From the NCBI GenBank assembly GCA_964057225.1, contig OZ059894.1:11904001-11968000 (forward strand): a stretch of 64,000 bases of DNA, in the 5' to 3' direction. The notes under the pieces were generated by a model. It did no database searches. It saw nothing but the letters and a program-made list of their open reading frames with translations, and had not been told where the DNA came from. Each line of letters begins with the position of its first letter. Positions within the stretch are counted from its first letter, which is position 1. The stretch is from Auanema rhodensis (taxonomy: Eukaryota; Animalia; Nematoda). Of this stretch, positions 1,753 through 63,224 are shown in pieces. Position numbers and translations under genes: made by a program.

Positions 1753-1847
1753 ACCAGTATAGTAATAGAACACATATTGAAGATTAATTCGATAAGAACA
1801 ATTTATTGACGTAGAGAATGTTTGTTCCGAAAAACTACAATATTAAA
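1753..1847 (-). pseudogene. Decayed relic: short-element 3' tail + U2 nt 39-79 + short-element 5' head (present in every unit)
   Basis: 1753-1762 accagtatag = element head; 1763-1803 = U2 39-79 with 5 transitions; 1804-1847 aligns to element tail 2267-2310. Confidence 0.85.
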
Positions 1848-2120
1848 CTATAAAAGTAACAAAAGCGTAGAGGCAGCAAAGACATGAATAAACATAAATG
1901 TAAATACAGAATTACCAGGTAGTACATAAGTATGACAAAAAATTATAAGAAAGCCATGAAAATAGAAGGTTTGTGAACAAATGAGAGGTACATCTTTGAT
2001 CGTATAGTCATTTCTAAACCGTTCGTATGCTGCAGCATCGTCATAAGCGTCACTCAAGTTGAATTTCCATGTGTACTACACGATTTTCATTCTTATTGTT
2101 ACATTCTTTCCCTGAGGGAA

Positions 2121-2266
2121 TGGGCCGTTCCCGCCAGCAGTGCAAGAGCGGGTCGACCCGTGAGGTGGAGCTAGCAAGCCAGCATCTACCTCAAGTCTCA
2201 AAAATCGGTTAACCTTATTGTGAACCAATGGAACACATATCGAAGGTTAATTCGATAAGAACGATT
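2121..2266 (-). pseudogene. U2: U2 3' part (nt 39-184) downstream of short element; representative of 14 such loci
   Basis: Identical to U2 nt 39-184. Confidence 0.95.
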
Positions 2267-3054
2267 TATTGAAGTAGATAATGTTTGTCCCGGAGGACTA
2301 CAATATTAAAATAATTACTGAAGCCCGAAGGCAGCGAGAAATAGTAAGGATACTACCTGCACTGAGTGCGTCGTATCATAAAAAAAGAGATAGCTAATGG
2401 GCAAGTTGAAGAGCTTGAAATTAACAATGACGTCACTAGAAGTAAAGTTTTCTATCTGCAGCTGCGGGTAAAGAGGGTCAGCGTAAGCAGAATTCAATTC
2501 TACCAACAATTAGTGGGAACATTGAGAGAACAGATGAAGGAGGAAATTGTAACTTCAAGTAAAATAGATTATATCTTCAGCTGCGGGTAAAGAGAGTCAG
2601 CTTTGTACAGATTACTAGTTTACATAAGAAGTGGTAACATTTCAAAAAAGGAGCACAACATAAAAAACGAGACTACGGACTATGAGGTAAATGTTATCAT
2701 TGTCTGGATCGATGATTCGGCATTTGATTGCAGCTGCGGATTGAGTGGATCAGCTTGCATGGCGTCCGCATTCGACATCAGGGAAAATGATGAGTTTCTT
2801 GAGGTCCGGCTCGGCGGGCTGTTATGTCCTATTCCCTGTTGATGGTGTTGTTGTCCTTGAGCTTGTTCTTCTTCCCAGAAAAAAAAAAACTGTGAAGCTG
2901 AAGAGTCCTATTAAACGTCTTTAAACGCAAGATTAATAAGAAGCTACTACAGCTAACACAGGACCGCCTCAAGGCCTGGTAGATCAACCAGTGTTGCTTC
3001 AATCACCAAGTATTGCGGCCTGGGCCCTTGGATCAATTCACAACACCAGTATAG
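2267..3054 (-). mobile_element. Short non-autonomous U2-inserted element (788 bp unique), copy 1
   Basis: Absent from intact units; same insertion point as autonomous element; 41-bp direct repeat of U2 nt 39-79 (2226-2266, 3055-3095); ends TTCAATAA(A). Confidence 0.88.
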
Positions 3055-3133
3055 CAATGGAACACATATCGAAGGTTAATTCGATAAGAACGATTACTAC
3101 ACTTTGATCTTAGCCAAAAGGCCGAGAAGCGAT
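3055..3133 (-). pseudogene. U2: U2 5' part (nt 1-79) fused to short element; representative of 14 such loci
   Basis: Identical to U2 nt 1-79, then continues CTATACTGGT. Confidence 0.95.
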
Positions 3134-3575
3134 ACAGCATAGCCATGAGTATCAAAGACATCAAGCAAATGTATCGTACTTGTTACGAGTGCACTCTCTC
3201 ATTTGAATATAAAAGTGTGGTTTGACAATCTTGACTGTACAGGTCATAAATGGCTCATATAAACTGTGGATTTACTCAACTTTTGGACTTATTTTTTTCT
3301 TATTCGAAGCGCTGCACTTTTTTCTATTCTTTTTATTCAAATACTTGTATATAGTTTTATATGTACGGTTGCAAAGTTTCCGAATATTTTATATATTTTT
3401 ATACAATAATTAGGAGAAGGTTAATACAATGAAATCTCCCAACTTTACAGTGTTTGTATTGCTTACAGTATCTAGAACAACCACTCTTGTAATATTAGAG
3501 CACATATCAATCAACAACTTTTTCTAGTTATCAAAGCTTTTTTATTTCTTCAAGATATTTCAAATAAAATATAAA

Positions 3576-3694
3576 AGCTTACGACACCCGGGATTCCCAA
3601 GCCGTCTCCGATCCAAGTACTAACCGGGCCCAACGTTGCTTGACTTGCCAGATCGGACGGGATGGCGTACTTTCAACGTGGTATGGTCGTAAGC
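3576..3694 (-). rRNA. 5S: 5S rRNA
   Basis: Identical copy. Confidence 0.98.
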
Positions 3695-3935
3695 AATGTT
3701 ATATTCTTCATTATCAGTTATATCACTCTAAATCTTGTTGTTAATAGTTAGGACCACAAAGAAAACAACAGGAACAGTAACAAATGAAATGCCCAAACTT
3801 TACAGTGTTCGAGTTATTTACAGTATCTAAGACTACCTCTGTCGTGTTATTAGAGCAAACATTCGATTAACAACAACTTTTTTTTAGTTATCAAAGCTTT
3901 TTTATTTCTTCAAAAAATTTCAAATAAAATATAAA

Positions 3936-4054
3936 AGCTTACGACACCCGGGATTCCCAAGCCGTCTCCGATCCAAGTACTAACCGGGCCCAACGTTGCT
4001 TGACTTGCCAGATCGGACGGGATGGCGTACTTTCAACGTGGTATGGTCGTAAGC
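3936..4054 (-). rRNA. 5S: 5S rRNA
   Basis: Identical copy. Confidence 0.98.
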
Positions 4055-4196
4055 AATGTCATATTCTTCATTATCAGTTATATCACTCTAAATCTTGTTG
4101 TTAATAGATACGACCACAAAGAAAACAACAGGAACAGTAACAATAACAAAAAAAATTTTTTTTTCACCTATGTGTCTAAAGGTTAGCCATGTATCC

Positions 4197-4246
<50 letters not shown>

Positions 4247-5428
4247 ACAGTAAAAAGTCCAATCAAGAGAGAAATTTTTTCAACACATAGTTGTTTTTTT
4301 TTTAAATATCATTGTTTTTCCTCATAACTCGGTTTAAACTCGTTCTAACCCGTTGAAATACGTCTAGAAAGTCTTTATAACATGCATATGTATGATAGAA
4401 CTTCATATTTATTGTAATAGAAAATTTTATTTTCAGACGTCTTGGTTAACAATGATATGTTTTACCCCCTTATAATTTTTATCATAATGTTCCTTATACG
4501 GAACGCTCAATGAAACTTGCTTCCAGAAAAATTTCTTTCTATTTTTTCTTCATATGTACGTAGATACTATAGAGAACTATGATAGAAAACTTTAACATTC
4601 ACGAAATCATCATTTCTCATTACGCTACGGAGGTTTAAAAAGCTGTGTTTTACCTTATAATAGACCGGAAAACCCTTGTGTTAAAACTGGACCGTTTTTA
4701 CACATATAAAAATGTCCCGTATTCGGGACCCTAATGTAACTTTTGATTCCCTATATTTTTTTTCATGAAATTTACAATCTACTGTAGAAAGAAGAATTAT
4801 TTTTATAAAAACTGTAAATTTTTGAAAAATGAAAACAAAACGAAAACAAAAACAACTTTTTTTTGAACATTTTCTCACACAAGGGTCCCCCCTTACCTAC
4901 TTTTTTTCTCATTACTCGTTTCAACCTCATCCGATCACTCTGCAAACATGTTTAATCGTTCTAACTTGTTGAAATACGTCTTAAAAGTCTAAACAACATG
5001 CATATGCATAATAGAAACCACCCGAATAGGCCCCCACGCACTAAACGAGATATATACATTACCAGTATAGTAATAGAACACATATTGAAGATTAATTCGA
5101 TAAGAACAATTTATTGACGTAGAGAATGTTTGTTCCGAAAAACTACAATATTAAACTATAAAAGTAACAAAAGCGTAGAGGCAGCAAAGACATGAATAAA
5201 CATAAATGTAAATACAGAATTACCAGGTAGTACATAAGTATGACAAAAAATTATAAGAAAGCCATGAAAATAGAAGGTTTGTGAACAAATGAGAGGTACA
5301 TCTTTGATCGTATAGTCATTTCTAAACCGTTCGTATGCTGCAGCATCGTCATAAGCGTCACTCAAGTTGAATTTCCATGTGTACTACACGATTTTCATTC
5401 TTATTGTTACATTCTTTCCCTGAGGGAA

Positions 5429-5575
5429 TGGGCCGTTCCCGCCAGCAGTGCAAGAGCGGGTCGACCCGTGAGGTGGAGCTAGCAAGCCAGCATCTACCTC
5501 AAGTCTCAAAAATCGGTTAACCTTATTGTGAACCAATGGAACACATATCGAAGGTTAATTCGATAAGAACGATTA
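5429..5575 (-). pseudogene. U2: U2 snRNA 3' part (nt 38-184) downstream of the retrotransposon
   Basis: Identical to intact U2 copies from nt 38. Confidence 0.95.
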
Positions 5576-8500
5576 ATGGTTTATTGAATAACTAATGTTA
5601 TGATACAATAAATAACCAATAAAAAAGAGCCCAGAATCGGGGAGACGGTATTACCAGTACAACTTAAAACAGCAAGTAATTAAAAAGTACATAATAAGAC
5701 ACATTGCCAACAGAGGCTAAAACGACTCAAGAGTCGGGGGAGTGGGTTAAAAAAAATGAACAAAAAAATGAATATTAAAGCAGAACAATGAGAAATCAAG
5801 TGCCGCTATGATCAAACAATTTGAGTGCCTACGGCAATGATGTTAAAAATAAACAACAAAATACATGTACCAATGAAGGTCAGAAAGAAAGAAACAAAAG
5901 ACAAAAATAAGTAATACAAAAAGTAAATACATTACAATCAAATCACAAACAAGTCAATTGATAATTTCTTCTTCATATTGCCTTACACCAGAAACATGTT
6001 CCACGTAGATATTCCTGGCCCACTTGATGGTATCGGCGACGACGAGCTTCTCCATTAGCCGGTTGTAGTGGCTGCTGATCTTGAGTGATCGGAGGGCTTG
6101 TCCGTTGAGCGGGTCCATAGTTCCAAGCATTCCTACGACATATGCTTCTACACTAGTCTTATAACCAAGACATTGGTATTGGCTGGCTATGTCAGCATAT
6201 TTCCTCTCCTTTATCATACGCGCGGCTATCATGGCTTGACGGCGGTTTTCATAGCTCACTGTAACATCAACGATACTACAGTGTTTTGCGTCATGATCGA
6301 CCACTACTATGTCAGGTCGGAGTGTACTATTAATGCCAGGAAGAGGCTGGTTAGTGTAAACTTCTCCGTTTTTAGGCTCTGGCAGGGCTTTGATAAGACG
6401 GTCCACGATGTTGTTGTGGCGGAGTTGGATTGCTCTCGTGTGAGAGTGGCAGTGTCCAAGAACATGTGCAGCAGTTTCGTTGGAGTAACTACACCTGCGG
6501 CACTGTTTGTTTCCTTCTCCGTGTCTTCTACAGCCATTGAGCTGGAGAGTATTGAGTCGAGCCTTGTGGATGAATCGCCAATCAGCAAACCGTATGAAAT
6601 CTCCCTTCGCCATAAAGTGATTGGACGCTTTGTTGAGCATTGTGACATCAAAGACTTTCCCTTGATCCGGTTTTTGAAGAAGGATCCGAAGGTCTTTCAG
6701 CCATAATGCCCGTCGCAGGCTTCTGTGGCATAGTGAAGGTGTTAACAGTTGGTTGTTTAGATTGAGTTCTAAACCACTTTCGAGGCATGTCCAGTTAGCG
6801 TTGATGAGTTTCTTGAGTTGACGCATCGCTACTCTTACTCTAGTCCAGATGGAGGAAACATCAGATGTTTCGGTGTCGAAAATGCCATCAACGGAACCGT
6901 TGTAATATGCAGCTGTCTCATCGTTACTGGCTTGACGTTTAATCCTTTTTGATGCTACTTTTTTTGAGTCTTGATGCGCAATATCAGCTACTACAAGATC
7001 AGATGACTTCAAAAGTTGGTAGGCATGAGTGACTTCACAGACGTCTGACAGGTGTTGGAGTCGAGAGAGACCAAGTCCGCCGTAGTTAGTTGGCAGGTAG
7101 ATTGGTTCAGCACTGGCGTTTGGAGGATAGTGCATCCATCTACGGGCACAGCGTTTGAGTTCTTTGTCAAAGGCGACTAGTTTACTCTTTGGGACGTGGC
7201 CATTCGTCATATGAAAATTAAGGCAGGGCATCAGGAAGGTGCGTACTGCGTCAGCTTTCTGCCATTCAGCAAGTAAGGATTTGTCAATTTTTTCCAAGTG
7301 TTGACTCATAATATTCACTGTTGGAACCGCAGACTTATGTAAATGCATTCCAGTAGGGATTCCCAGGTGGGAGTAGCTGTCGAATTTGCTGAGAGCGGGT
7401 AGAGAGGAGCTCTGTAGCATGTATGAGGCTGTTGATATTTTCCCTTTGTCGATCGTCAAGGTGGCGCATTTCGCTGGTTTGAAGGTCAAGCCTGTGAAAT
7501 TAGCCGCATTTGATGCTGCGTCCAACATTTTCTGTAGATCTTCTGATGATGAGGAGACCAGGGCAAGGTCATCGGCGTACGCTAGCACAGCGATGTTGTG
7601 ATTGTGTAGCTTATAGCCAGTAGAGGATTCCAAGATGGTTTTAATTAGAGGTTCAATGGCAAGGTTGAACAGGATCGGAGATAGTGGGGATCCTTGTAAC
7701 ACACCTGCATGAACTGGAATGGTCGATGTGAGTCCGGAGCCTGTCTGGATTCTTGTAGAGGCATCTGTGTATAGAGCTCGTACTCGGGATATTGAGGCTT
7801 CAGCCACTCCTGACCATCTTAGAACGTCTAGCAGAGTTTCGTGTGGCAGCGATCCAAAAGCGTTTGCGAGATCAAGCCAAGCAATTGCAATTTTCTCACG
7901 TTTACGTTTAGCGTCCGCAATGGTACTTTGCAACATAAAGTTGTGTTCCATGCATCCAGCTTTGGCCACAAAGCCCTTTTGGGAGGGAGAAAGTCTTTTT
8001 TCTGCTCTTGCCCATGTTAGCAGTCGATGCGTAAGACAAGCTGAGTACGTCTTACCAATTGTGCACGAAAGTGCTATTGGTCGCCAGTTGTTAATGTCAG
8101 CTTTATCACCTTTCTTATGGATGAGGACGGTGGTCGACTCTTTCCAGGAAAAAGGGATGTGTCCTAGCTTGTGTACGGTGTTAAATATCGCTGCTAATAT
8201 GTGACCTCCTTGGTCAAATTTCTTCCAGTGCGAGTATCGAAGTCCATCAGCTCCTGGAGCCGTATCGCTGCAACGTCGTATGCGTTCCCAGACTTCCAAA
8301 GGGGTGAAAACACCTTCTAATGGGTCGGTACTAGCTGGCAAATCCGGTCTGGTGACTGTGATGGGGAGGGCTGGGCCTTGACTGCTGTGAACAGAAAGGA
8401 AATGTTTTTCAACCTCTGCAGATGGTATGGTGCAGGTTTCACTTTGTTCTCCGAGCAGTTGTCGAAAGGCTTTCTTCTTGTTGGCCCTCCAGAGCTTCTG

Positions 8501-9284
8501 GAGCTTCATCGCCTGGGTTTTTTGGTCTTCCTCAGGTTGTGTGTGTGGTCGGCGCCTTTGTCGGAAGTTGGGAACTTTGATCATAATGTCAAGAGACTTT
8601 CTGATTGCGTCTACCAACTCTTCCAGGACCTGCTCGAGCTCACTTTTGCACACAACCTTTTTAATTCTATCCACCCAAGTATTTTCAGAGTTTCTATTCG
8701 GATCAGGGTCGGCAAAAAATGGTTCTGTACTCGAAACCCTGATCTCGTTGAATATTTCACTCTCTCGCGGAAGGGGGGAAACTTCGGCCTCTGGGGACAA
8801 GTCCAGAATTGGGGCCTCAAACAAGCGTACCGTTGATGGAGATCCTTGTTCCTGTCCACTGGATGATGTTTCCTCCATTGTACGCTCCTCCACGGGCGGG
8901 GTGGTCGTCCTTGTGCCTGGTGGGCGGGTGTTCCTGATCCTCCGCAATATAGGGCGGGAACTGGGCTCTCTCGGAGATAGAGGTGAGATCACCACAGTTT
9001 CCTCTATGATGCGGAGGCATCCTTCAGCTTTTTTCTGATGGCTTTTAACGGCCTTCAGATTGCTGGTGAGGCCACAGGCACGGCACTCAAATTCTACTCC
9101 GACCTCATGTTCTCTCCGAAGATGGCGGACGAGACCATTGTGGTCTGAGTAGGATCGCGGAATAGGAGCGCAGATTGAACAAGAAAAAGGGCTCTGAAGA
9201 GGCACCTTTAGCTTGTAAAGCCCTTGCTCCATCTCTAGCAGATCTAAAGACTTACGTAGTACAGTTGCAATATCGATTTAGCCA
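5576..9284 (-). mobile_element. Full-length U2 snRNA-targeting non-LTR retrotransposon (Utopia-like), unique portion
   Basis: Interrupts U2 co-directionally at nt 38/39; 52-nt leader, single ORF, 378-nt 3' UTR ending TTCAATAAACCAT without poly(A); flanked by 59-bp direct repeat of U2 nt 38-96 (5517-5575 and 9285-9343). RLE-type elements targeting this U2 position are the known Utopia family. Confidence 0.93.
5954..9232 (-). CDS. Non-LTR retrotransposon protein (Utopia/NeSL-like, R2-group): N-terminal zinc fingers, reverse transcriptase, CCHC knuckle, restriction-like endonuclease
   Basis: 1092 aa uninterrupted. CSIC..HLRREH and CRAC..SHQ zinc fingers; RT motifs APGADG, LIHKKGD..NWRPIAL, QKGF, WLDLANAFGSLPH, GVLQGSPLSPILFN, YADDL; CRRC..ETAAHVLGHC; RHN; LRPDIVV..IVDVTV..K..KY (PD-(D/E)xK). 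Confidence 0.97.
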   Translation of the reverse strand: MEQGLYKLKVPLQSPFSCSICAPIPRSYSDHNGLVRHLRREHEVGVEFECRACGLTSNLKAVKSHQKKAEGCLRIIEETVVISPLSPREPSSRPILRRIRNTRPPGTRTTTPPVEERTMEETSSSGQEQGSPSTVRLFEAPILDLSPEAEVSPLPRESEIFNEIRVSSTEPFFADPDPNRNSENTWVDRIKKVVCKSELEQVLEELVDAIRKSLDIMIKVPNFRQRRRPHTQPEEDQKTQAMKLQKLWRANKKKAFRQLLGEQSETCTIPSAEVEKHFLSVHSSQGPALPITVTRPDLPASTDPLEGVFTPLEVWERIRRCSDTAPGADGLRYSHWKKFDQGGHILAAIFNTVHKLGHIPFSWKESTTVLIHKKGDKADINNWRPIALSCTIGKTYSACLTHRLLTWARAEKRLSPSQKGFVAKAGCMEHNFMLQSTIADAKRKREKIAIAWLDLANAFGSLPHETLLDVLRWSGVAEASISRVRALYTDASTRIQTGSGLTSTIPVHAGVLQGSPLSPILFNLAIEPLIKTILESSTGYKLHNHNIAVLAYADDLALVSSSSEDLQKMLDAASNAANFTGLTFKPAKCATLTIDKGKISTASYMLQSSSLPALSKFDSYSHLGIPTGMHLHKSAVPTVNIMSQHLEKIDKSLLAEWQKADAVRTFLMPCLNFHMTNGHVPKSKLVAFDKELKRCARRWMHYPPNASAEPIYLPTNYGGLGLSRLQHLSDVCEVTHAYQLLKSSDLVVADIAHQDSKKVASKRIKRQASNDETAAYYNGSVDGIFDTETSDVSSIWTRVRVAMRQLKKLINANWTCLESGLELNLNNQLLTPSLCHRSLRRALWLKDLRILLQKPDQGKVFDVTMLNKASNHFMAKGDFIRFADWRFIHKARLNTLQLNGCRRHGEGNKQCRRCSYSNETAAHVLGHCHSHTRAIQLRHNNIVDRLIKALPEPKNGEVYTNQPLPGINSTLRPDIVVVDHDAKHCSIVDVTVSYENRRQAMIAARMIKERKYADIASQYQCLGYKTSVEAYVVGMLGTMDPLNGQALRSLKISSHYNRLMEKLVVADTIKWARNIYVEHVSGVRQYEEEIIN

Positions 9285-9380
9285 TTAACCTTATTGTGAA
9301 CCAATGGAACACATATCGAAGGTTAATTCGATAAGAACGATTACTACACTTTGATCTTAGCCAAAAGGCCGAGAAGCGAT
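9285..9380 (-). pseudogene. U2: U2 snRNA 5' part (nt 1-96) fused to the retrotransposon 5' end
   Basis: Identical to intact U2 nt 1-96, then diverges 3 nt before the Sm site. Confidence 0.95.
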
Positions 9381-10491: not shown

Positions 10492-11660
10492 ACAGTAAAA
10501 AGTCCAATCAAGAGAGAAATTTTTTCAACACATAGTTGTTTTTTTTTTAAATATCATTGTTTTTCCTCATAACTCGGTTTAAACTCGTTCTAACCCGTTG
10601 AAATACGTCTAGAAAGTCTTTATAACATGCATATGTATGATAGAACTTCATATTTATTGTAATAGAAAATTTTATTTTCAGACGTCTTGGTTAACAATGA
10701 TATGTTTTACCCCCTTATAATTTTTATCATAATGTTCCTTATACGGAACGCTCAATGAAACTTGCTTCCAGAAAAATTTCTTTCTATTTTTTCTTCATAT
10801 GTACGTAGATACTATAGAGAACTATGATAGAAAACTTTAACATTCACGAAATCATCATTTCTCATTACGCTACGGAGGTTTAAAAAGCTGTGTTTTACCT
10901 TATAATAGACCGGAAAACCCTTGTGTTAAAACTGGACCGTTTTTACACATATAAAAATGTCCCGTATGCGGGACCCTAATGTAACTTTTGATTCCCTATA
11001 TTTTTTTTCATGAAATTTACAATCTACTGTAGAAAGAAGAATTATTTTTATAAAAACTGTAAATTTTTGAAAAATGAAAACAAAACGAAAACAAAAACAA
11101 CTTTTTTTTGAACATTTTCTCACACAAGGGTCCCCCCTTACCTACTTTTTTTCTCATTACTCGTTTCAACCTCATCCGATCACTCTGCAAACATGTTTAA
11201 TCGTTCTAACTTGTTGAAATACGTCTTAAAAGTCTAAACAACATGCATATGCATAATAGAAACCACCCGAATAGGCCCCCACGCACTAAACGAGATATAT
11301 ACATTACCAGTATAGTAATAGAACACATATTGAAGATTAATTCGATAAGAACAATTTATTGACGTAGAGAATGTTTGTTCCGAAAAACTACAATATTAAA
11401 CTATAAAAGTAACAAAAGCGTAGAGGCAGCAAAGACATGAATAAACATAAATGTAAATACAGAATTACCAGGTAGTACATAAGTATGACAAAAAATTATA
11501 AGAAAGCCATGAAAATAGAAGGTTTGTGAACAAATGAGAGGTACATCTTTGATCGTATAGTCATTTCTAAACCGTTCGTATGCTGCAGCATCGTCATAAG
11601 CGTCACTCAAGTTGAATTTCCATGTGTACTACACGATTTTCATTCTTATTGTTACATTCT

Positions 11661-14298: not shown

Positions 14299-15086
14299 TA
14301 TTGAAGTAGTCAATGTTTGTCCCGGAGGACTACAATTTTAAAATAATTACTGAAGCCGTTAGGCAGCGAGAAAATAGTAAGGATACTATCCGCACTGAGT
14401 GCGTCGTATCATGAAAAAAGAGATAGCTAATGGGCAAGTTGAAGAGCTTGAAATTAACAATGACGTCACTAGAAGTAAAGTTTTCTATCTGCAGCTGCGG
14501 GTAAAGAGGGTCAGCGTAAGCAGAATTCAATTCTACCAACAATTAGTGGGAACATTGAGAGAACAGATGAAGGAGGAAATTGTAACTTCAAGTAAAATAG
14601 ATTATATCTTCAGCTGCGGGTAAAGAGAGTCAGCTTTGTACAGATTACTAGTTTACATAAGAAGTGGTAACATTTCAAAAAAGGAGCACAACATAAAAAA
14701 CGAGACTACGGACTATGAGGTAAATGTTATCATTGTCTGGATCGATGATTCGGCATTTGATTGCAGCTGCGGATTGAGTGGATCAGCTTGCATGGCGTCC
14801 GCATTCGACATCAGGGAAAATGATGAGTTTCTTGAGGTCCGGCTCGGCGGGCTGTTATGTCCTATTCCCTGTTGATGGTGTTGTTGTCCTTGAGCTTGTT
14901 CTTCTTCCCAGAAAAAAAAAACTGTGAAGCTGAAGAGTCCTATTAAACGTCTTTAAACGCAAGATTAATAAGAAGCTACTACAGCTAACACAGGACCGCC
15001 TCAAGGCCTGGTAGATCAACCAGTGTTGCTTCAATCACCAAGTATTGCGGCCTGGGCCCTTGGATCAATTCACAACACCAGTATAG
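14299..15086 (-). mobile_element. Short U2-inserted element, copy 2 (variant 3' end)
   Basis: As copy 1 but ~9 substitutions + 1 insertion in the last ~115 nt. Confidence 0.88.
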
Positions 15087-17603: not shown

Positions 17604-18391
17604 TATTGAAGTAGATAATGTTTGTCCCGGAGGACTACAATATTAAAATAATTACTGAAGCCCGAAGGCAGCGAGAAATAGTAAGGATACTACCTGCACT
17701 GAGTGCGTCGTATCATAAAAAAAGAGATAGCTAATGGGCAAGTTGAAGAGCTTGAAATTAACAATGACGTCACTAGAAGTAAAGTTTTCTATCTGCAGCT
17801 GCGGGTAAAGAGGGTCAGCGTAAGCAGAATTCAATTCTACCAACAATTAGTGGGAACATTGAGAGAACAGATGAAGGAGGAAATTGTAACTTCAAGTAAA
17901 ATAGATTATATCTTCAGCTGCGGGTAAAGAGAGTCAGCTTTGTACAGATTACTAGTTTACATAAGAAGTGGTAACATTTCAAAAAAGGAGCACAACATAA
18001 AAAACGAGACTACGGACTATGAGGTAAATGTTATCATTGTCTGGATCGATGATTCGGCATTTGATTGCAGCTGCGGATTGAGTGGATCAGCTTGCATGGC
18101 GTCCGCATTCGACATCAGGGAAAATGATGAGTTTCTTGAGGTCCGGCTCGGCGGGCTGTTATGTCCTATTCCCTGTTGATGGTGTTGTTGTCCTTGAGCT
18201 TGTTCTTCTTCCCAGAAAAAAAAAAACTGTGAAGCTGAAGAGTCCTATTAAACGTCTTTAAACGCAAGATTAATAAGAAGCTACTACAGCTAACACAGGA
18301 CCGCCTCAAGGCCTGGTAGATCAACCAGTGTTGCTTCAATCACCAAGTATTGCGGCCTGGGCCCTTGGATCAATTCACAACACCAGTATAG
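17604..18391 (-). mobile_element. Short U2-inserted element, copy 3
   Basis: Matches copy 1. Confidence 0.88.
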
Positions 18392-20912: not shown

Positions 20913-21700
20913 TATTGAAGTAGATAATGTTTGTCCCGGAGGACTACAATATTAAAATAATTACTGAAGCCCGAAGGCAGCGAGAAATAGTAAGGATACT
21001 ACCTGCACTGAGTGCGTCGTATCATAAAAAAAGAGATAGCTAATGGGCAAGTTGAAGAGCTTGAAATTAACAATGACGTCACTAGAAGTAAAGTTTTCTA
21101 TCTGCAGCTGCGGGTAAAGAGGGTCAGCGTAAGCAGAATTCAATTCTACCAACAATTAGTGGGAACATTGAGAGAACAGATGAAGGAGGAAATTGTAACT
21201 TCAAGTAAAATAGATTATATCTTCAGCTGCGGGTAAAGAGAGTCAGCTTTGTACAGATTACTAGTTTACATAAGAAGTGGTAACATTTCAAAAAAGGAGC
21301 ACAACATAAAAAACGAGACTACGGACTATGAGGTAAATGTTATCATTGTCTGGATCGATGATTCGGCATTTGATTGCAGCTGCGGATTGAGTGGATCAGC
21401 TTGCATGGCGTCCGCATTCGACATCAGGGAAAATGATGAGTTTCTTGAGGTCCGGCTCGGCGGGCTGTTATGTCCTATTCCCTGTTGATGGTGTTGTTGT
21501 CCTTGAGCTTGTTCTTCTTCCCAGAAAAAAAAAAACTGTGAAGCTGAAGAGTCCTATTAAACGTCTTTAAACGCAAGATTAATAAGAAGCTACTACAGCT
21601 AACACAGGACCGCCTCAAGGCCTGGTAGATCAACCAGTGTTGCTTCAATCACCAAGTATTGCGGCCTGGGCCCTTGGATCAATTCACAACACCAGTATAG
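20913..21700 (-). mobile_element. Short U2-inserted element, copy 4
   Basis: Matches copy 1. Confidence 0.88.
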
Positions 21701-24345: not shown

Positions 24346-24454
24346 AGCTTACGACACCCGGGATTCTCCGATCCAAGTACTAACCGGGCCCAACGTTGCT
24401 TGACTTGCCAGATCGGACGGGATGGCGTACTTTCAACGTGGTATGGTCGTAAGC
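24346..24454 (-). pseudogene. 5S: 5S rRNA with 10-bp internal deletion
   Basis: ggattctccg instead of ggattcccaagccgtctccg. Confidence 0.9.
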
Positions 24455-28804: not shown

Positions 28805-29592
28805 TATTGAAGTAGATAATGTTTGTCCCGGAGGACTACAATATTAAAATAATTACTGAAGCCCGAAGGCAGCGAGAAATAGTAAGGATACTACCTGCAC
28901 TGAGTGCGTCGTATCATAAAAAAAGAGATAGCTAATGGGCAAGTTGAAGAGCTTGAAATTAACAATGACGTCACTAGAAGTAAAGTTTTCTATCTGCAGC
29001 TGCGGGTAAAGAGGGTCAGCGTAAGCAGAATTCAATTCTACCAACAATTAGTGGGAACATTGAGAGAACAGATGAAGGAGGAAATTGTAACTTCAAGTAA
29101 AATAGATTATATCTTCAGCTGCGGGTAAAGAGAGTCAGCTTTGTACAGATTACTAGTTTACATAAGAAGTGGTAACATTTCAAAAAAGGAGCACAACATA
29201 AAAAACGAGACTACGGACTATGAGGTAAATGTTATCATTGTCTGGATCGATGATTCGGCATTTGATTGCAGCTGCGGATTGAGTGGATCAGCTTGCATGG
29301 CGTCCGCATTCGACATCAGGGAAAATGATGAGTTTCTTGAGGTCCGGCTCGGCGGGCTGTTATGTCCTATTCCCTGTTGATGGTGTTGTTGTCCTTGAGC
29401 TTGTTCTTCTTCCCAGAAAAAAAAAAACTGTGAAGCTGAAGAGTCCTATTAAACGTCTTTAAACGCAAGATTAATAAGAAGCTACTACAGCTAACACAGG
29501 ACCGCCTCAAGGCCTGGTAGATCAACCAGTGTTGCTTCAATCACCAAGTATTGCGGCCTGGGCCCTTGGATCAATTCACAACACCAGTATAG
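28805..29592 (-). mobile_element. Short U2-inserted element, copy 5
   Basis: Matches copy 1. Confidence 0.88.
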
Positions 29593-37067: not shown

Positions 37068-37854
37068 TATTGAAGTAGATAATGTTTGTCCCGGAGGACT
37101 ACAATATTAAAATAATTACTGAAGCCCGAAGGCAGCGAGAAATAGTAAGGATACTACCTGCACTGAGTGCGTCGTATCATAAAAAAAGAGATAGCTAATG
37201 GGCAAGTTGAAGAGCTTGAAATTAACAATGACGTCACTAGAAGTAAAGTTTTCTATCTGCAGCTGCGGGTAAAGAGGGTCAGCGTAAGCAGAATTCAATT
37301 CTACCAACAATTAGTGGGAACATTGAGAGAACAGATGAAGGAGGAAATTGTAACTTCAAGTAAAATAGATTATATCTTCAGCTGCGGGTAAAGAGAGTCA
37401 GCTTTGTACAGATTACTAGTTTACATAAGAAGTGGTAACATTTCAAAAAAGGAGCACAACATAAAAAACGAGACTACGGACTATGAGGTAAATGTTATCA
37501 TTGTCTGGATCGATGATTCGGCATTTGATTGCAGCTGCGGATTGAGTGGATCAGCTTGCATGGCGTCCGCATTCGACATCAGGGAAAATGATGAGTTTCT
37601 TGAGGTCCGGCTCGGCGGGCTGTTATGTCCTATTCCCTGTTGATGGTGTTGTTGTCCTTGAGCTTGTTCTTCTTCCCAGAAAAAAAAAACTGTGAAGCTG
37701 AAGAGTCCTATTAAACGTCTTTAAACGCAAGATTAATAAGAAGCTACTACAGCTAACACAGGACCGCCTCAAGGCCTGGTAGATCAACCAGTGTTGCTTC
37801 AATCACCAAGTATTGCGGCCTGGGCCCTTGGATCAATTCACAACACCAGTATAG
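37068..37854 (-). mobile_element. Short U2-inserted element, copy 6
   Basis: Matches copy 1, A-tract 1 nt shorter. Confidence 0.88.
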
Positions 37855-40359: not shown

Positions 40360-41147
40360 TATTGAAGTAGATAATGTTTGTCCCGGAGGACTACAATATT
40401 AAAATAATTACTGAAGCCCGAAGGCAGCGAGAAATAGTAAGGATACTACCTGCACTGAGTGCGTCGTATCATAAAAAAAGAGATAGCTAATGGGCAAGTT
40501 GAAGAGCTTGAAATTAACAATGACGTCACTAGAAGTAAAGTTTTCTATCTGCAGCTGCGGGTAAAGAGGGTCAGCGTAAGCAGAATTCAATTCTACCAAC
40601 AATTAGTGGGAACATTGAGAGAACAGATGAAGGAGGAAATTGTAACTTCAAGTAAAATAGATTATATCTTCAGCTGCGGGTAAAGAGAGTCAGCTTTGTA
40701 CAGATTACTAGTTTACATAAGAAGTGGTAACATTTCAAAAAAGGAGCACAACATAAAAAACGAGACTACGGACTATGAGGTAAATGTTATCATTGTCTGG
40801 ATCGATGATTCGGCATTTGATTGCAGCTGCGGATTGAGTGGATCAGCTTGCATGGCGTCCGCATTCGACATCAGGGAAAATGATGAGTTTCTTGAGGTCC
40901 GGCTCGGCGGGCTGTTATGTCCTATTCCCTGTTGATGGTGTTGTTGTCCTTGAGCTTGTTCTTCTTCCCAGAAAAAAAAAAACTGTGAAGCTGAAGAGTC
41001 CTATTAAACGTCTTTAAACGCAAGATTAATAAGAAGCTACTACAGCTAACACAGGACCGCCTCAAGGCCTGGTAGATCAACCAGTGTTGCTTCAATCACC
41101 AAGTATTGCGGCCTGGGCCCTTGGATCAATTCACAACACCAGTATAG
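40360..41147 (-). mobile_element. Short U2-inserted element, copy 7
   Basis: Matches copy 1. Confidence 0.88.
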
Positions 41148-43672: not shown

Positions 43673-44460
43673 TATTGAAGTAGATAATGTTTGTCCCGGA
43701 GGACTACAATATTAAAATAATTACTGAAGCCCGAAGGCAGCGAGAAATAGTAAGGATACTACCTGCACTGAGTGCGTCGTATCATAAAAAAAGAGATAGC
43801 TAATGGGCAAGTTGAAGAGCTTGAAATTAACAATGACGTCACTAGAAGTAAAGTTTTCTATCTGCAGCTGCGGGTAAAGAGGGTCAGCGTAAGCAGAATT
43901 CAATTCTACCAACAATTAGTGGGAACATTGAGAGAACAGATGAAGGAGGAAATTGTAACTTCAAGTAAAATAGATTATATCTTCAGCTGCGGGTAAAGAG
44001 AGTCAGCTTTGTACAGATTACTAGTTTACATAAGAAGTGGTAACATTTCAAAAAAGGAGCACAACATAAAAAACGAGACTACGGACTATGAGGTAAATGT
44101 TATCATTGTCTGGATCGATGATTCGGCATTTGATTGCAGCTGCGGATTGAGTGGATCAGCTTGCATGGCGTCCGCATTCGACATCAGGGAAAATGATGAG
44201 TTTCTTGAGGTCCGGCTCGGCGGGCTGTTATGTCCTATTCCCTGTTGATGGTGTTGTTGTCCTTGAGCTTGTTCTTCTTCCCAGAAAAAAAAAAACTGTG
44301 AAGCTGAAGAGTCCTATTAAACGTCTTTAAACGCAAGATTAATAAGAAGCTACTACAGCTAACACAGGACCGCCTCAAGGCCTGGTAGATCAACCAGTGT
44401 TGCTTCAATCACCAAGTATTGCGGCCTGGGCCCTTGGATCAATTCACAACACCAGTATAG
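43673..44460 (-). mobile_element. Short U2-inserted element, copy 8
   Basis: Matches copy 1. Confidence 0.88.
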
Positions 44461-46619: not shown

Positions 46620-47407
46620 TATTGAAGTAGATAATGTTTGTCCCGGAGGACTACAATATTAAAATAATTACTGAAGCCCGAAGGCAGCGAGAAATAGTAA
46701 GGATACTACCTGCACTGAGTGCGTCGTATCATAAAAAAAGAGATAGCTAATGGGCAAGTTGAAGAGCTTGAAATTAACAATGACGTCACTAGAAGTAAAG
46801 TTTTCTATCTGCAGCTGCGGGTAAAGAGGGTCAGCGTAAGCAGAATTCAATTCTACCAACAATTAGTGGGAACATTGAGAGAACAGATGAAGGAGGAAAT
46901 TGTAACTTCAAGTAAAATAGATTATATCTTCAGCTGCGGGTAAAGAGAGTCAGCTTTGTACAGATTACTAGTTTACATAAGAAGTGGTAACATTTCAAAA
47001 AAGGAGCACAACATAAAAAACGAGACTACGGACTATGAGGTAAATGTTATCATTGTCTGGATCGATGATTCGGCATTTGATTGCAGCTGCGGATTGAGTG
47101 GATCAGCTTGCATGGCGTCCGCATTCGACATCAGGGAAAATGATGAGTTTCTTGAGGTCCGGCTCGGCGGGCTGTTATGTCCTATTCCCTGTTGATGGTG
47201 TTGTTGTCCTTGAGCTTGTTCTTCTTCCCAGAAAAAAAAAAACTGTGAAGCTGAAGAGTCCTATTAAACGTCTTTAAACGCAAGATTAATAAGAAGCTAC
47301 TACAGCTAACACAGGACCGCCTCAAGGCCTGGTAGATCAACCAGTGTTGCTTCAATCACCAAGTATTGCGGCCTGGGCCCTTGGATCAATTCACAACACC
47401 AGTATAG
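46620..47407 (-). mobile_element. Short U2-inserted element, copy 9
   Basis: Matches copy 1. Confidence 0.88.
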
Positions 47408-49928: not shown

Positions 49929-50716
49929 TATTGAAGTAGATAATGTTTGTCCCGGAGGACTACAATATTAAAATAATTACTGAAGCCCGAAGGCAGCGAG
50001 AAATAGTAAGGATACTACCTGCACTGAGTGCGTCGTATCATAAAAAAAGAGATAGCTAATGGGCAAGTTGAAGAGCTTGAAATTAACAATGACGTCACTA
50101 GAAGTAAAGTTTTCTATCTGCAGCTGCGGGTAAAGAGGGTCAGCGTAAGCAGAATTCAATTCTACCAACAATTAGTGGGAACATTGAGAGAACAGATGAA
50201 GGAGGAAATTGTAACTTCAAGTAAAATAGATTATATCTTCAGCTGCGGGTAAAGAGAGTCAGCTTTGTACAGATTACTAGTTTACATAAGAAGTGGTAAC
50301 ATTTCAAAAAAGGAGCACAACATAAAAAACGAGACTACGGACTATGAGGTAAATGTTATCATTGTCTGGATCGATGATTCGGCATTTGATTGCAGCTGCG
50401 GATTGAGTGGATCAGCTTGCATGGCGTCCGCATTCGACATCAGGGAAAATGATGAGTTTCTTGAGGTCCGGCTCGGCGGGCTGTTATGTCCTATTCCCTG
50501 TTGATGGTGTTGTTGTCCTTGAGCTTGTTCTTCTTCCCAGAAAAAAAAAAACTGTGAAGCTGAAGAGTCCTATTAAACGTCTTTAAACGCAAGATTAATA
50601 AGAAGCTACTACAGCTAACACAGGACCGCCTCAAGGCCTGGTAGATCAACCAGTGTTGCTTCAATCACCAAGTATTGCGGCCTGGGCCCTTGGATCAATT
50701 CACAACACCAGTATAG
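49929..50716 (-). mobile_element. Short U2-inserted element, copy 10
   Basis: Matches copy 1. Confidence 0.88.
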
Positions 50717-52875: not shown

Positions 52876-53663
52876 TATTGAAGTAGATAATGTTTGTCCC
52901 GGAGGACTACAATATTAAAATAATTACTGAAGCCCGAAGGCAGCGAGAAATAGTAAGGATACTACCTGCACTGAGTGCGTCGTATCATAAAAAAAGAGAT
53001 AGCTAATGGGCAAGTTGAAGAGCTTGAAATTAACAATGACGTCACTAGAAGTAAAGTTTTCTATCTGCAGCTGCGGGTAAAGAGGGTCAGCGTAAGCAGA
53101 ATTCAATTCTACCAACAATTAGTGGGAACATTGAGAGAACAGATGAAGGAGGAAATTGTAACTTCAAGTAAAATAGATTATATCTTCAGCTGCGGGTAAA
53201 GAGAGTCAGCTTTGTACAGATTACTAGTTTACATAAGAAGTGGTAACATTTCAAAAAAGGAGCACAACATAAAAAACGAGACTACGGACTATGAGGTAAA
53301 TGTTATCATTGTCTGGATCGATGATTCGGCATTTGATTGCAGCTGCGGATTGAGTGGATCAGCTTGCATGGCGTCCGCATTCGACATCAGGGAAAATGAT
53401 GAGTTTCTTGAGGTCCGGCTCGGCGGGCTGTTATGTCCTATTCCCTGTTGATGGTGTTGTTGTCCTTGAGCTTGTTCTTCTTCCCAGAAAAAAAAAAACT
53501 GTGAAGCTGAAGAGTCCTATTAAACGTCTTTAAACGCAAGATTAATAAGAAGCTACTACAGCTAACACAGGACCGCCTCAAGGCCTGGTAGATCAACCAG
53601 TGTTGCTTCAATCACCAAGTATTGCGGCCTGGGCCCTTGGATCAATTCACAACACCAGTATAG
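52876..53663 (-). mobile_element. Short U2-inserted element, copy 11
   Basis: Matches copy 1. Confidence 0.88.
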
Positions 53664-56184: not shown

Positions 56185-56972
56185 TATTGAAGTAGATAAT
56201 GTTTGTCCCGGAGGACTACAATATTAAAATAATTACTGAAGCCCGAAGGCAGCGAGAAATAGTAAGGATACTACCTGCACTGAGTGCGTCGTATCATAAA
56301 AAAAGAGATAGCTAATGGGCAAGTTGAAGAGCTTGAAATTAACAATGACGTCACTAGAAGTAAAGTTTTCTATCTGCAGCTGCGGGTAAAGAGGGTCAGC
56401 GTAAGCAGAATTCAATTCTACCAACAATTAGTGGGAACATTGAGAGAACAGATGAAGGAGGAAATTGTAACTTCAAGTAAAATAGATTATATCTTCAGCT
56501 GCGGGTAAAGAGAGTCAGCTTTGTACAGATTACTAGTTTACATAAGAAGTGGTAACATTTCAAAAAAGGAGCACAACATAAAAAACGAGACTACGGACTA
56601 TGAGGTAAATGTTATCATTGTCTGGATCGATGATTCGGCATTTGATTGCAGCTGCGGATTGAGTGGATCAGCTTGCATGGCGTCCGCATTCGACATCAGG
56701 GAAAATGATGAGTTTCTTGAGGTCCGGCTCGGCGGGCTGTTATGTCCTATTCCCTGTTGATGGTGTTGTTGTCCTTGAGCTTGTTCTTCTTCCCAGAAAA
56801 AAAAAAACTGTGAAGCTGAAGAGTCCTATTAAACGTCTTTAAACGCAAGATTAATAAGAAGCTACTACAGCTAACACAGGACCGCCTCAAGGCCTGGTAG
56901 ATCAACCAGTGTTGCTTCAATCACCAAGTATTGCGGCCTGGGCCCTTGGATCAATTCACAACACCAGTATAG
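56185..56972 (-). mobile_element. Short U2-inserted element, copy 12
   Basis: Matches copy 1. Confidence 0.88.
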
Positions 56973-59493: not shown

Positions 59494-60281
59494 TATTGAA
59501 GTAGATAATGTTTGTCCCGGAGGACTACAATATTAAAATAATTACTGAAGCCCGAAGGCAGCGAGAAATAGTAAGGATACTACCTGCACTGAGTGCGTCG
59601 TATCATAAAAAAAGAGATAGCTAATGGGCAAGTTGAAGAGCTTGAAATTAACAATGACGTCACTAGAAGTAAAGTTTTCTATCTGCAGCTGCGGGTAAAG
59701 AGGGTCAGCGTAAGCAGAATTCAATTCTACCAACAATTAGTGGGAACATTGAGAGAACAGATGAAGGAGGAAATTGTAACTTCAAGTAAAATAGATTATA
59801 TCTTCAGCTGCGGGTAAAGAGAGTCAGCTTTGTACAGATTACTAGTTTACATAAGAAGTGGTAACATTTCAAAAAAGGAGCACAACATAAAAAACGAGAC
59901 TACGGACTATGAGGTAAATGTTATCATTGTCTGGATCGATGATTCGGCATTTGATTGCAGCTGCGGATTGAGTGGATCAGCTTGCATGGCGTCCGCATTC
60001 GACATCAGGGAAAATGATGAGTTTCTTGAGGTCCGGCTCGGCGGGCTGTTATGTCCTATTCCCTGTTGATGGTGTTGTTGTCCTTGAGCTTGTTCTTCTT
60101 CCCAGAAAAAAAAAAACTGTGAAGCTGAAGAGTCCTATTAAACGTCTTTAAACGCAAGATTAATAAGAAGCTACTACAGCTAACACAGGACCGCCTCAAG
60201 GCCTGGTAGATCAACCAGTGTTGCTTCAATCACCAAGTATTGCGGCCTGGGCCCTTGGATCAATTCACAACACCAGTATAG
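59494..60281 (-). mobile_element. Short U2-inserted element, copy 13
   Basis: Matches copy 1. Confidence 0.88.
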
Positions 60282-62436: not shown

Positions 62437-63224
62437 TATTGAAGTAGATAATGTTTGTCCCGGAGGACTACAATATTAAAATAATTACTGAAGCCCGAAG
62501 GCAGCGAGAAATAGTAAGGATACTACCTGCACTGAGTGCGTCGTATCATAAAAAAAGAGATAGCTAATGGGCAAGTTGAAGAGCTTGAAATTAACAATGA
62601 CGTCACTAGAAGTAAAGTTTTCTATCTGCAGCTGCGGGTAAAGAGGGTCAGCGTAAGCAGAATTCAATTCTACCAACAATTAGTGGGAACATTGAGAGAA
62701 CAGATGAAGGAGGAAATTGTAACTTCAAGTAAAATAGATTATATCTTCAGCTGCGGGTAAAGAGAGTCAGCTTTGTACAGATTACTAGTTTACATAAGAA
62801 GTGGTAACATTTCAAAAAAGGAGCACAACATAAAAAACGAGACTACGGACTATGAGGTAAATGTTATCATTGTCTGGATCGATGATTCGGCATTTGATTG
62901 CAGCTGCGGATTGAGTGGATCAGCTTGCATGGCGTCCGCATTCGACATCAGGGAAAATGATGAGTTTCTTGAGGTCCGGCTCGGCGGGCTGTTATGTCCT
63001 ATTCCCTGTTGATGGTGTTGTTGTCCTTGAGCTTGTTCTTCTTCCCAGAAAAAAAAAAACTGTGAAGCTGAAGAGTCCTATTAAACGTCTTTAAACGCAA
63101 GATTAATAAGAAGCTACTACAGCTAACACAGGACCGCCTCAAGGCCTGGTAGATCAACCAGTGTTGCTTCAATCACCAAGTATTGCGGCCTGGGCCCTTG
63201 GATCAATTCACAACACCAGTATAG
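62437..63224 (-). mobile_element. Short U2-inserted element, copy 14
   Basis: Matches copy 1. Confidence 0.88.

Follow-up and report, generated by a model that had tools for sequence, protein, structure and literature searches.

Within an array of tandemly repeated U2 and 5S genes lie short noncoding insertions, here called S, at the U2 site that is also occupied by an intact Utopia-type non-LTR retrotransposon, here called B, and we judge it probable that the S insertions are non-autonomous, U2-site-specific retroelements mobilized in trans by the reverse transcriptase (RT) and endonuclease of B. The window, by which we mean the whole 64,000-nt stretch of DNA that was analyzed, consists of this array, with every gene on the minus strand; 5 of its 20 U2 bodies are uninterrupted, 14 contain an S insert, and 1 contains B. 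A genome-wide census, based on pattern counts over the 1.3-Mb array, returned 422 U2 bodies, 47 S-type copies (an occupancy of ~10% of U2 units), and 74 B 3' ends, all within one array on one contig. The 14:1 excess of S over B that had been put forward in the initial annotation is therefore a local effect: the genome as a whole has more B 3' ends (74, including those of 47 full-length elements) than S-type copies (47).

The Utopia-type element

B and its flanks are laid out in the window as follows.

5576-9284, minus strand: B, full-length Utopia-type non-LTR retrotransposon, 3709 bp
5954-9232, minus strand: B ORF, open, 1092 aa
9107-9181, minus strand: N-terminal C2H2 finger of the B ORF
7454-8122, minus strand: RT of the B ORF, with YADD at 7559-7585
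6449-6502, minus strand: CCHC of the B ORF
6197-6319, minus strand: PD..D/E..K restriction-like endonuclease (RLE) of the B ORF, a motif only, with no Pfam match
5576-5953, minus strand: B 3' UTR, 378 nt, terminus ..AACATTAGTTATTCAATAAACCAT
5517-5575, minus strand: 58-59-bp U2 duplication (nt 38/39-96) flanking B, downstream copy
9285-9343, minus strand: upstream copy of this duplication, within a U2 nt 1-96 head at 9285-9380

The description of 5576-9284 as an intact, Utopia-like element with RT and RLE domains was borne out by the 1092-aa ORF, its match to RVT_1 (E = 3e-28), its motifs, and the location of B at U2 nt 38/39; the ORF is also similar to solved R2 proteins (E = 7e-69). With the zinc finger, CCHC, and endonuclease motifs read from the translation, B has the Utopia layout of an N-terminal zinc finger, a central RT, a C-terminal zinc finger, and a PD..D/ExK endonuclease. 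The ORFs of the copies examined are open, dN/dS between copies is ~0.16, and B is demonstrably, at the level of its sequence, intact, multicopy, and under purifying selection. The surplus of B 3' ends (74) over 5' ends (47) indicates 5' truncation. Such truncation is typical of target-primed reverse transcription (TPRT). Relatives with 42-48% identity to B (L044, L052, L053, and L054) end at U2 nt 39; L052 is from Dendroctonus ponderosae, which is among the reported Utopia hosts (PMC4640811). A 19-nt match to the B tail on contig C3 was rejected as a copy of B, as the adjoining 43 nt of the B 3' UTR is unmatched there.

Structure and families of S

The S features of the window are as follows.

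2267-3054, minus strand: S1, reference copy, 788 bp, noncoding, between perfect 41-bp repeats
2955-3054, minus strand: the conserved first ~100 nt of S (5' domain), with a long predicted hairpin
2267-2376, minus strand: the conserved last ~110 nt of S (3' domain), with three hairpins and then the AACATT..TTCAATA terminal tail
2226-2266, minus strand: 41-bp U2 duplication (nt 39-79) flanking S1, downstream copy, lying in the U2 body (nt 39-190) at 2115-2266
3055-3095, minus strand: upstream copy of this duplication, lying in the U2 head (nt 1-79) at 3055-3133
14299-15086, minus strand: S1b, a recombinant of an S1 body and an S2-type 3' ~90 nt, 98.6% to S1
17604-18391, 20913-21700, 28805-29592, and 37068-37854 (1-nt gap), minus strand: S1 copies
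40360-41147, 43673-44460, 46620-47407, and 49929-50716, minus strand: S1 copies
52876-53663, 56185-56972, 59494-60281, and 62437-63224, minus strand: S1 copies
1757-1896, minus strand: decayed junction relic, made up of an S 5' start, a U2 nt 39-79-like piece, and ~86 nt of S 3' sequence

The initial annotation had reported a 788-bp sequence without an ORF at 2267-3054 in 14 of the 20 U2 genes; the recurrence count agrees (12 identical copies, 1 with a 1-nt gap, and 1 at 98.6%), as does a longest stop-free stretch of 83 codons. A blastx comparison of the S families with B and 120 relatives gave nothing below E 0.3 and thus no coding remnant. At a permissive threshold, 2267-3054 had no Rfam, tRNA, 5S, or 7SL match; S has neither a head derived from tRNA, 7SL, or 5S, with its internal Pol III promoter, nor the dispersal across many genomic sites that mark a classical SINE. 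No ribozyme was found in S or in the ends of B in an Rfam search up to E 5, the B ends likewise gave no tRNA, 5S, or 7SL match, and no promoter was identified; sequence models frequently fail to detect ribozymes of the R2 type. A hand-built HDV-like fold that combined U2 nt 31-79 with the 5' end of S was discarded, as it departed from the canonical topology.

S-type elements fall into four diverged families: S1, which is present in the window, and S2, S3, and S4 elsewhere in the array. S1 and S2 are only ~73% alike overall, but invariant columns among the four families make up 70-85% of the terminal ~100 nt (78-85% at the 5' end) versus 5-35% of the interior, a pattern that argues against neutral decay and for selection acting on the ends. 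The alifold of the 5' domain reaches -26 kcal/mol, without compensatory changes. Precisely at the 5' junction, S4 and S1-3 differ by 11 nt, and yet both adjoin U2 nt 79, which would be hard to obtain by random deletion. The 5'-truncated S copies that were to be sought genome-wide were absent, the 47 5' ends matching the 47 3' domains, and the S 3'-domain motif occurs 47 times within the array and not at all outside it. A scan of metagenome contigs with an invariant S 20-mer revealed no S homologue outside this organism group; seven matches in GC-rich bacterial DNA were set aside as chance.

Insertion site and termini

S and B both lie in the sense orientation of U2, which resumes at nt 39 after S and at nt 38/39 after B; this common bottom-strand site, U2 nt 38/39, is the published insertion site of Utopia (PMC4640811). 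The shared position and orientation claimed in the initial annotation therefore stand, but not the placement of the S junction directly after GTGTAG: this motif is U2 nt 32-37, and the junction lies one base beyond it, after T38. As anticipated, U2 nt 39 onward adjoins S genome-wide (32 of 32 S1-3 3' ends), and U2 nt 79 precedes all 47 S 5' ends. All 47 copies are in U2, with none at non-U2 sites and no terminal inverted repeats, in keeping with the U2 specificity that had been proposed. The U2 nt 1-96 junction was found upstream of B in 47 of 47 full-length copies, and the B 3' ends checked are followed by TAATCGTTC (nt 38/39) in 62 of 65 cases and by CGTTC (nt 42) in the other 3. The flanking U2 repeat is a perfect 41 bp (nt 39-79) for S and 58-59 bp (nt 38/39-96) for B in every copy; S thus alters its target differently from B, a difference that would not be expected of a single endonuclease responsible for both cuts. 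The U2 head upstream of S1 (3055-3133) retains an intact nt 38/39 target. Antisense pairing between leaders and U2 near the site, visible by eye for S4 (TACTACAC), did not stand out against shuffled sequences (p 0.056 for S4, 0.07-0.15 for S1-S3, and 0.38 for B).

The 3' terminus of S is TTCAATA, the next two A's being U2 nt 39-40, and that of B is TTCAATAAACCAT(T), so that the 'TTCAATAAA' common to both is out of register between them, by 6-7 nt. The two ends are alike at 16 of 19 positions, or at ~23 of 26 with one 9-13-nt gap; no internal B window scores as high (0 of 706), and by shuffling the similarity to B has a p of ~0.004 for S1 and S2 and 0.01-0.04 for S4, with no significant similarity for S3. 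The earlier observation that the last ~20 nt of S and B are alike therefore holds above chance for S1, S2, and S4, whereas the identical ending attributed to them gives way to the shift in register. At the 5' end, only S4 resembles B (~17 nt, AATCGATA..ACTG; p ~0.01). The likeness of S and B is restricted to ~17-26 nt at the extreme ends: blastn of S against B found nothing, and S is not recognizable as an internal-deletion derivative of B. The best match of an S 3'-domain covariance model in the 4-kb B region was the end of the B 3' UTR, at an E value of 0.58 and without the hairpins, and the same model had no significant matches in relatives. The S 3' tail does resemble the Utopia tail, including an AATAAA-like motif of the relatives, and one chimera joins S1(1-742) to a 172-nt B tail with microhomology at the junction.

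Spread within the array and expression

Eighteen of the 32 S1-3 copies lie within one ~73-kb block of near-identical units in a repeating 3309/2947-bp alternation. This alternation points to unequal crossover as the process by which the block of 18 S1 copies was amplified, and most window copies belong to this block; the caution, voiced at the outset, that near-identical copies may have spread in this way was well founded. The unit haplotypes of the window, with only 8 variable blocks, are too uniform for insertion and conversion to be separated there; S accompanies either allele of one indel and occurs in units with a single 5S gene as well as in those with two. Compound arrangements (S-U2-B, B-U2-S, and S4 tandems) are present and were considered as proof of independent insertion, but unequal crossover between U2 repeats yields identical products. 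Every unit also carries the S/U2/S junction relic, at 73-90% identity, and so old a relic in each unit indicates a long residence of S.

In runs X11 and X12, which are probably RNA (a status that we have guessed) and whose contigs give no transcript ends, contig depth was 16-17 for S1, 62-68 for S3, and 2-3.5 for B; in DNA run X8, it was 320 for B, 207 for S1, and 17 for S3. S contigs are thus relatively far commoner than B contigs in the two probable RNA runs. Both S and B are present in the runs of organisms A-D.

We think it rather unlikely that S elements are fossils, perhaps of an extinct Utopia lineage that cut the top strand at nt 79, which spread only by crossover or conversion and not through B. 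The concentration of copies in a single patterned block would suit such an origin, as would the lack of truncated copies, the fully uniform junctions, a duplication length unlike that of B, the capacity of crossover to account for compound arrangements, and the absence of any autonomous element with the S termini. Against it, the ends are conserved in four diverged families, near-identical S1 copies are spread across ~1 Mb in at least four distinct structural contexts, the 11-nt difference between S4 and S1-3 leaves both at U2 nt 79, S is overrepresented in the probable RNA runs, and a chimera of S and B exists. There is very little likelihood that S is retained by host selection, with the U2(1-79)+S transcript serving as a functional noncoding RNA or a regulator of U2 dosage: the ends are conserved and predicted to be structured, and the apparent expression of S3 per copy is far above that of S1, but S is found in only a tenth or so of units, as very different families and tandem multimers, destroys the U2 gene that hosts it, sits exactly at a retrotransposon nick site, and matches no Rfam family. 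It is hardly credible that S is other mobile DNA, such as a Dada-like non-autonomous DNA transposon, or a product of array rearrangement, for although Dada-type DNA transposons are reported to target snRNA genes (PMC8869645) and arthropod Utopia families do not usually have so long a flanking duplication, S lacks terminal inverted repeats, joins U2 exactly at the Utopia nick site and always in U2 sense, has a Utopia-like 3' tail, and has an interior unrelated to the array spacer, the junction relic excepted.

Discussion

Mobilization of S in trans by B, as proposed in the initial annotation, is favored by the shared site and orientation, the terminal similarity, the noncoding nature of S, and its U2 specificity, although no event was found for S that requires retrotransposition rather than recombination; with uniform 5' junctions and no truncated copies, S offers no direct hallmark of independent insertion events. 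We suggest that the U2 promoter of the interrupted gene would drive transcription through S, giving a read-through RNA headed by U2 sequence, and that the B protein would bind the conserved 3' domain and terminal tail of this RNA, nick U2 at nt 38/39, and prime S cDNA there by TPRT. The upstream U2 piece, extending to nt 79 for S and to nt 96 for B, may ride on the RNA and guide the 5' join, which would explain both the lineage-specific duplication length and the uniform 5' junction. Inserted copies would then be multiplied or lost mainly by unequal crossover, from which most window copies would derive. More tentatively, it is possible that rider and driver RNAs alike carry U2 pieces, that S elements are a long-lived and diversified line of U2-promoter-driven parasites of Utopia, and that the 41- and 59-bp "duplications" are inherited RNA heads, which rebuild an intact target ahead of each insertion. 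Were this so, insertions could be stacked, as in the S4 tandems, the S-U2-B compounds, and the relic, and S would be the first non-autonomous partner of a U2-specific retrotransposon, with a new mode of self-target regeneration.

Utopia elements are U2 snRNA gene-specific RLE non-LTR retrotransposons with no target duplication in arthropod families and a 20-bp duplication in reptile families (Kojima & Jurka 2015, PMC4640811). B resembles them in its domain layout, in the U2 nt 38/39 start downstream, in its restriction to U2, and in its tandem insertions; it differs in its 58-59-bp duplication and high copy number (74 3' ends in a 422-unit U2 and 5S array). No mention of a non-autonomous partner is made in that study, nor did we find a report of one in the literature, in agreement with the initial annotation, whose author was aware of no described U2-site-specific partner of this kind.

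Close parallels to S are the R2 SIDEs and R2/R1 hybrid SIDEs, short, ORF-less elements that are presumed to borrow the TPRT machinery of autonomous elements and that are plainly built by joining the 3' end of the autonomous element to its 5' ribozyme, with variable 5' junctions (Eickbush & Eickbush 2012, PMC3414825). S is likewise ORF-less and shares the specific site of an RLE element, and the S/B chimera recalls the hybrids, but only ~17-26 nt per end are like B, no ribozyme was detected, the junctions are uniform, and S has diversified into four families. SINEU elements, U1/U2-headed SINEs mobilized by Tx1-Mar (Kojima 2015, PMC4494074), are similarly non-autonomous, with snRNA sequence at the 5' side and a partner inferred from shared target preference; they are, however, dispersed in Mariner copies, depend on a partner whose endonuclease is of the APE type, and include the head within the element, whereas the U2 piece upstream of S is simply part of the host gene, and it is the U2 gene that is targeted. 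Uniform 5' junctions have also been described for R2 elements whose RNA retains upstream 28S sequence, and were explained by annealing of this host sequence to the target (Eickbush, Burke & Eickbush 2013, PMC3774820), which offers a reason for the constant, lineage-specific junctions at nt 79 and nt 96; R2 processing is by a demonstrated HDV-like ribozyme, however, and none was found for S or B, in which the host segment kept on the RNA would be located downstream of the nick rather than upstream of it.

Development of site-specific RLE retrotransposons, R2 among them, as gene-insertion tools is under way, and the recognition of RNA by their proteins is a central question. A natural pair of an intact Utopia element and four diverged noncoding riders, in which no more than the ~100-nt ends and a ~20-nt tail are kept, would show by comparison which RNA features the Utopia protein needs. 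Such a pair would also bring to snRNA genes the autonomous/non-autonomous relationship known for R2 in rDNA. With the long U2 duplications, an intact target remains ahead of each insertion, which may explain the persistence of these elements in a 422-copy array, where insertion could continue without exhausting the functional U2 genes.

Results

Organization of the array and its insertions

An Rfam search of the window identified U2 bodies (20) and 5S genes (about 37) on the minus strand only, arranged in units of approximately 2.46 to 2.48 kb that each carry one or two 5S genes. Of the U2 genes, five have no insertion, 14 are interrupted by the short element S (reference copy S1, 2267-3054, minus strand), and one is interrupted by B, a non-LTR retrotransposon of the restriction-like endonuclease (RLE) type (5576-9284, minus strand). 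In the 181-Mb assembly of 112 contigs, the array spans roughly 10.9-12.2 Mb of the contig (C1) on which the window occupies positions 11,904,001-11,968,000, and it holds 422 U2 3' bodies. The array has at least one inverted segment, since approximately 20 U2 units at C1:11223000-11303000, together with several copies of B, have the reverse orientation. One 5S copy (24346-24454) is probably defective: it has a 10-bp deletion (TCCCAAGCCG) and reaches 92 bits where the other 5S copies reach 111. A (TA)n microsatellite in the spacer (900-940 and the equivalent place in each unit) varies more than any other part of the unit, with differences between units of up to 20 bases (10 TA repeats).

Insertions and related features in the window (genes read in the U2 sense)
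S-bearing U2 gene: U2 nt 1-79, S (788 nt), U2 nt 39-190
2226-2266 and 3055-3095: 41-bp perfect repeat around S, two copies of U2 nt 39-79
B-bearing U2 gene: U2 nt 1-96, B (3709 nt), U2 nt 38/39-190
5517-5575 and 9285-9343: 58-59-bp perfect repeat around B
B: 52-nt leader, 1092-aa ORF, 378-nt 3' UTR
1757-1896, with equivalents at, e.g., 5065-5204 and 11310-11449: decayed stacked-S junction

In both arrangements, the upstream U2 head therefore keeps a complete nt 38/39 target. The B ORF encodes a C2H2 finger, an RVT_1 domain with YADD, a CCHC finger, and a PD..D/E..K motif, and it matches solved R2 proteins at an E value of 7e-69. The longest ORF in S is of 83 codons or fewer, and searches of S for inverted repeats and for Rfam matches yielded none.

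B as a Utopia-type element

Utopia elements are RLE retrotransposons in which the downstream U2 sequence starts at nt 39, with no target duplication in arthropod families and one of 20 bp in reptiles; non-autonomous partners are not mentioned (Kojima & Jurka, PMC4640811). Judged by its U2 insertion site and protein layout, B is a Utopia-type element, although the long, target-regenerating U2 duplications of this array are unlike those of published Utopia families. The best named relatives of its protein are from the nematodes Plectus, Panagrolaimus, and Diploscapter (45-61% identity), followed by those from scorpions and insects. Four relatives (42-48% identity), from two metagenome/Logan contigs, Dendroctonus ponderosae, and Centruroides, likewise end at U2 nt 39, and an AATAAA-like motif lies 3-11 nt ahead of this junction in all four (L044:12700-12727, L052:6050-6077, L053:2390-2419, and L054:4395-4422, L052 being D. 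ponderosae) and in B (CAATAAACCAT); it may be a conserved 3'-end signal of the clade. S terminates in CAATA, and A39-A40 of U2 supply the rest of such a motif.

Genome-wide census

Copies were counted genome-wide by exact sequence patterns. All 32 of the S1-S3 3' ends are followed by U2 nt 39 onward, a point the initial annotation had proposed to check, and neither S nor B has any copy outside the array. The 5' ends of S number 35 of the S1-S3 type and 12 of the S4 type, each directly preceded by U2 to nt 79; since the 3'-domain motif also occurs 47 times, each S-type copy is full length, S termini occur on no longer element, and the 5'-truncated copies that had been sought are absent among these 47. 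For B, 74 3' UTR ends were found with only 47 canonical 5' ends, each at U2 nt 96, so about one-third of copies have a variant or truncated 5' end, the pattern that target-primed reverse transcription would be expected to leave. The 14:1 excess of the short element first reported proved to be local to the window: approximately 10% of U2 genes genome-wide carry an S-type element, and 47 S-type copies compare with the 74 B 3' ends. Among the 65 B ends with an exact tail, 62 adjoin U2 nt 38/39 and three adjoin nt 42. The latter (C1:11110303, 12029166, and 12052713) show a 4-nt target loss and share a G-to-T tail change, which points to a B subfamily or separate insertion events.

S families and their conserved ends

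Besides S1, three families were distinguished: S2 (783 nt, 73% identity to S1), S3 (743 nt), and S4 (865 nt, with 11 additional nt at the 5' end). In a four-way alignment, the first ~100 nt have 78-85% invariant columns over most of the region (60% in the first alignment window, where the extra 11 nt of S4 add gap columns) and most of the last ~110 nt has about 68%, whereas the interior has 5-35% and is alignable via short motifs only. The 5' domain is predicted to fold as a long hairpin and the 3' domain as three hairpins, in family sequences too alike for compensatory changes to show. One window copy (14299-15086) is a recombinant, with an S1 body, S2-type sequence over the last ~90 nt, and a terminal variant of its own (..CATTGACTAC..). 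Every unit also has, at a distance of about 260 bp behind U2, a decayed junction of two stacked S-type elements. It comprises the 3' end of S (identity of 85% over 47 nt and 73% over 86 nt), a piece resembling U2 nt 39-79 (90%), and an S 5' start.

Sequence relationship between S and B

Ordinary blastn gave no match between S and B, and a search of S for a B coding remnant found none. Comparisons anchored at the extreme ends exceed chance. The last 60 nt of S1/S2 score 24 against B (shuffle P = 0.004), a score reached by none of 706 internal B windows; the alignment comprises TATTGTA, a gap opposite a 13-nt hairpin in S, and AACATTA..TA.TTCAATA. The proposed terminal likeness holds for S1/S2 and also for S4 (shuffle P = 0.014-0.04) and fails for S3, whose tail gave no significant score. 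S4 and B also share AATCGATA..ACTG within their first 40 nt (P about 0.01), a stretch missing from S1-S3. When the 3' domain of S was represented by a covariance model, the top match across 4 kb of the B region coincided precisely with the B 3' end, but only at E = 0.58 and with the hairpins unmatched; the S hairpins were not found in B.

A single-copy chimera at C1:11338320-11339237 (L029:1330-2247) joins S1 nt 1-742 to the last 172 nt of a B 3' UTR, 96% identical to the window's B, at a TTTTAA microhomology; U2 nt 38-96 and a further B element come next. It could have arisen by template switching of the reverse transcriptase or by deletion within an S-U2-B compound.

Activity and expression

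All 12 of the B ORFs fetched are open, with 23 distinct codon differences (15 synonymous, 8 nonsynonymous) and a dN/dS of about 0.16, indicating that a functional protein was at work as B lineages spread. Contigs were the form in which public runs were examined. In two runs guessed to be RNA (X11 and X12), S1 contigs have a depth of 16-17 and S3-type contigs 62-68, B is represented by three short contigs at 2-3.5, and the depth of U2 repeat bins is low. The corresponding depths in DNA run X8 are about 320 for B, about 207 for S1, 17 for S3-type, and thousands for U2 bins. That both the S:B and the S3:S1 ratio are inverted argues that X11 and X12 reflect transcripts and that S RNAs outnumber B RNA, although per-contig depth is a poor measure and contig ends, set by graph branching, do not show transcript ends. 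S3-type contigs in these runs (L034:4900-5606) are about fourfold deeper than S1, against 3 and about 31 genomic copies, respectively, and per-copy expression seems very unequal. The two elements also occur in DNA runs whose labels name three further organisms or strains, where S1 is identical and B differs by about 1%. Neither a ribozyme nor a promoter was detected.

Discussion

We consider mobilization of S in trans by B the probable explanation of these data. The strongest argument that S elements have been copied by way of a step in which RNA or protein is recognized, and not just carried by the array, is the pairing of conserved ends with divergent interiors, the pattern that selection for mobility yields. 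S is a family and not a single insertion: U2 nt 79 adjoins both S4 and S1-S3 despite the 11-nt difference precisely at this junction, which is awkward for descent from one event. Among site-specific RLE elements, R2 is known to have non-autonomous partners (SIDEs; PMC3414825), and snRNA-headed SINEs (SINEU) have been assigned a partner by shared target (PMC4494074). Our literature search bore out the initial impression of novelty, finding no report of a non-autonomous partner for Utopia or any U2-specific element.

Mobilization by B is limited by the lack of truncated S copies and of any event that was necessarily retrotransposition of S, by the absence of the S hairpins from B, and by the missing tail similarity in S3. 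That S is a fossil, spread at present by recombination only, is a less likely reading. The caution that copies may have spread by unequal crossover was well founded, as 18 of the 32 S1-S3 copies lie within C1:11,906,267-11,979,346 in near-identical units of alternating length (3309 and 2947 bp), the signature of this process. Compound arrangements (S-U2-B at L020 and L034, B-U2-S at L022, S4-S1 at L027) and four tandem S4 copies (C1:11633792-11637295), spaced at 906 bp (865 + 41) with the 41-bp U2 piece as sole separator, can arise by re-insertion or crossover, both routes fitting.

Under mobilization by B, the U2 promoter would drive transcription through the U2 head into the element, and the B protein would recognize its own RNA at the 3' end. 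It would also bind the 3' domain and tail of S, either with lower efficiency or because S mimics the B RNA. The protein would then nick the bottom strand at U2 nt 38/39 and prime cDNA synthesis there, and the U2 head would be part of the element RNA, its cDNA annealing to the target. Such a head best explains the constant, lineage-specific 5' junctions (nt 79 in four S families, nt 96 in 47/47 B), and similar annealing has been proposed for R2 elements with uniform junctions (PMC3774820). The 41-bp and 59-bp duplications would be inherited heads and not the outcome of separate cuts, and the chief objection to an enzyme shared by S and B would fall away. Once inserted, copies would be multiplied or removed by unequal crossover. 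Each insertion would rebuild an intact target upstream, making stacked arrangements possible, and the decayed junction in every unit indicates that the stacking of S-type elements, by then already flanked by the 41-bp repeat, is old in this array.
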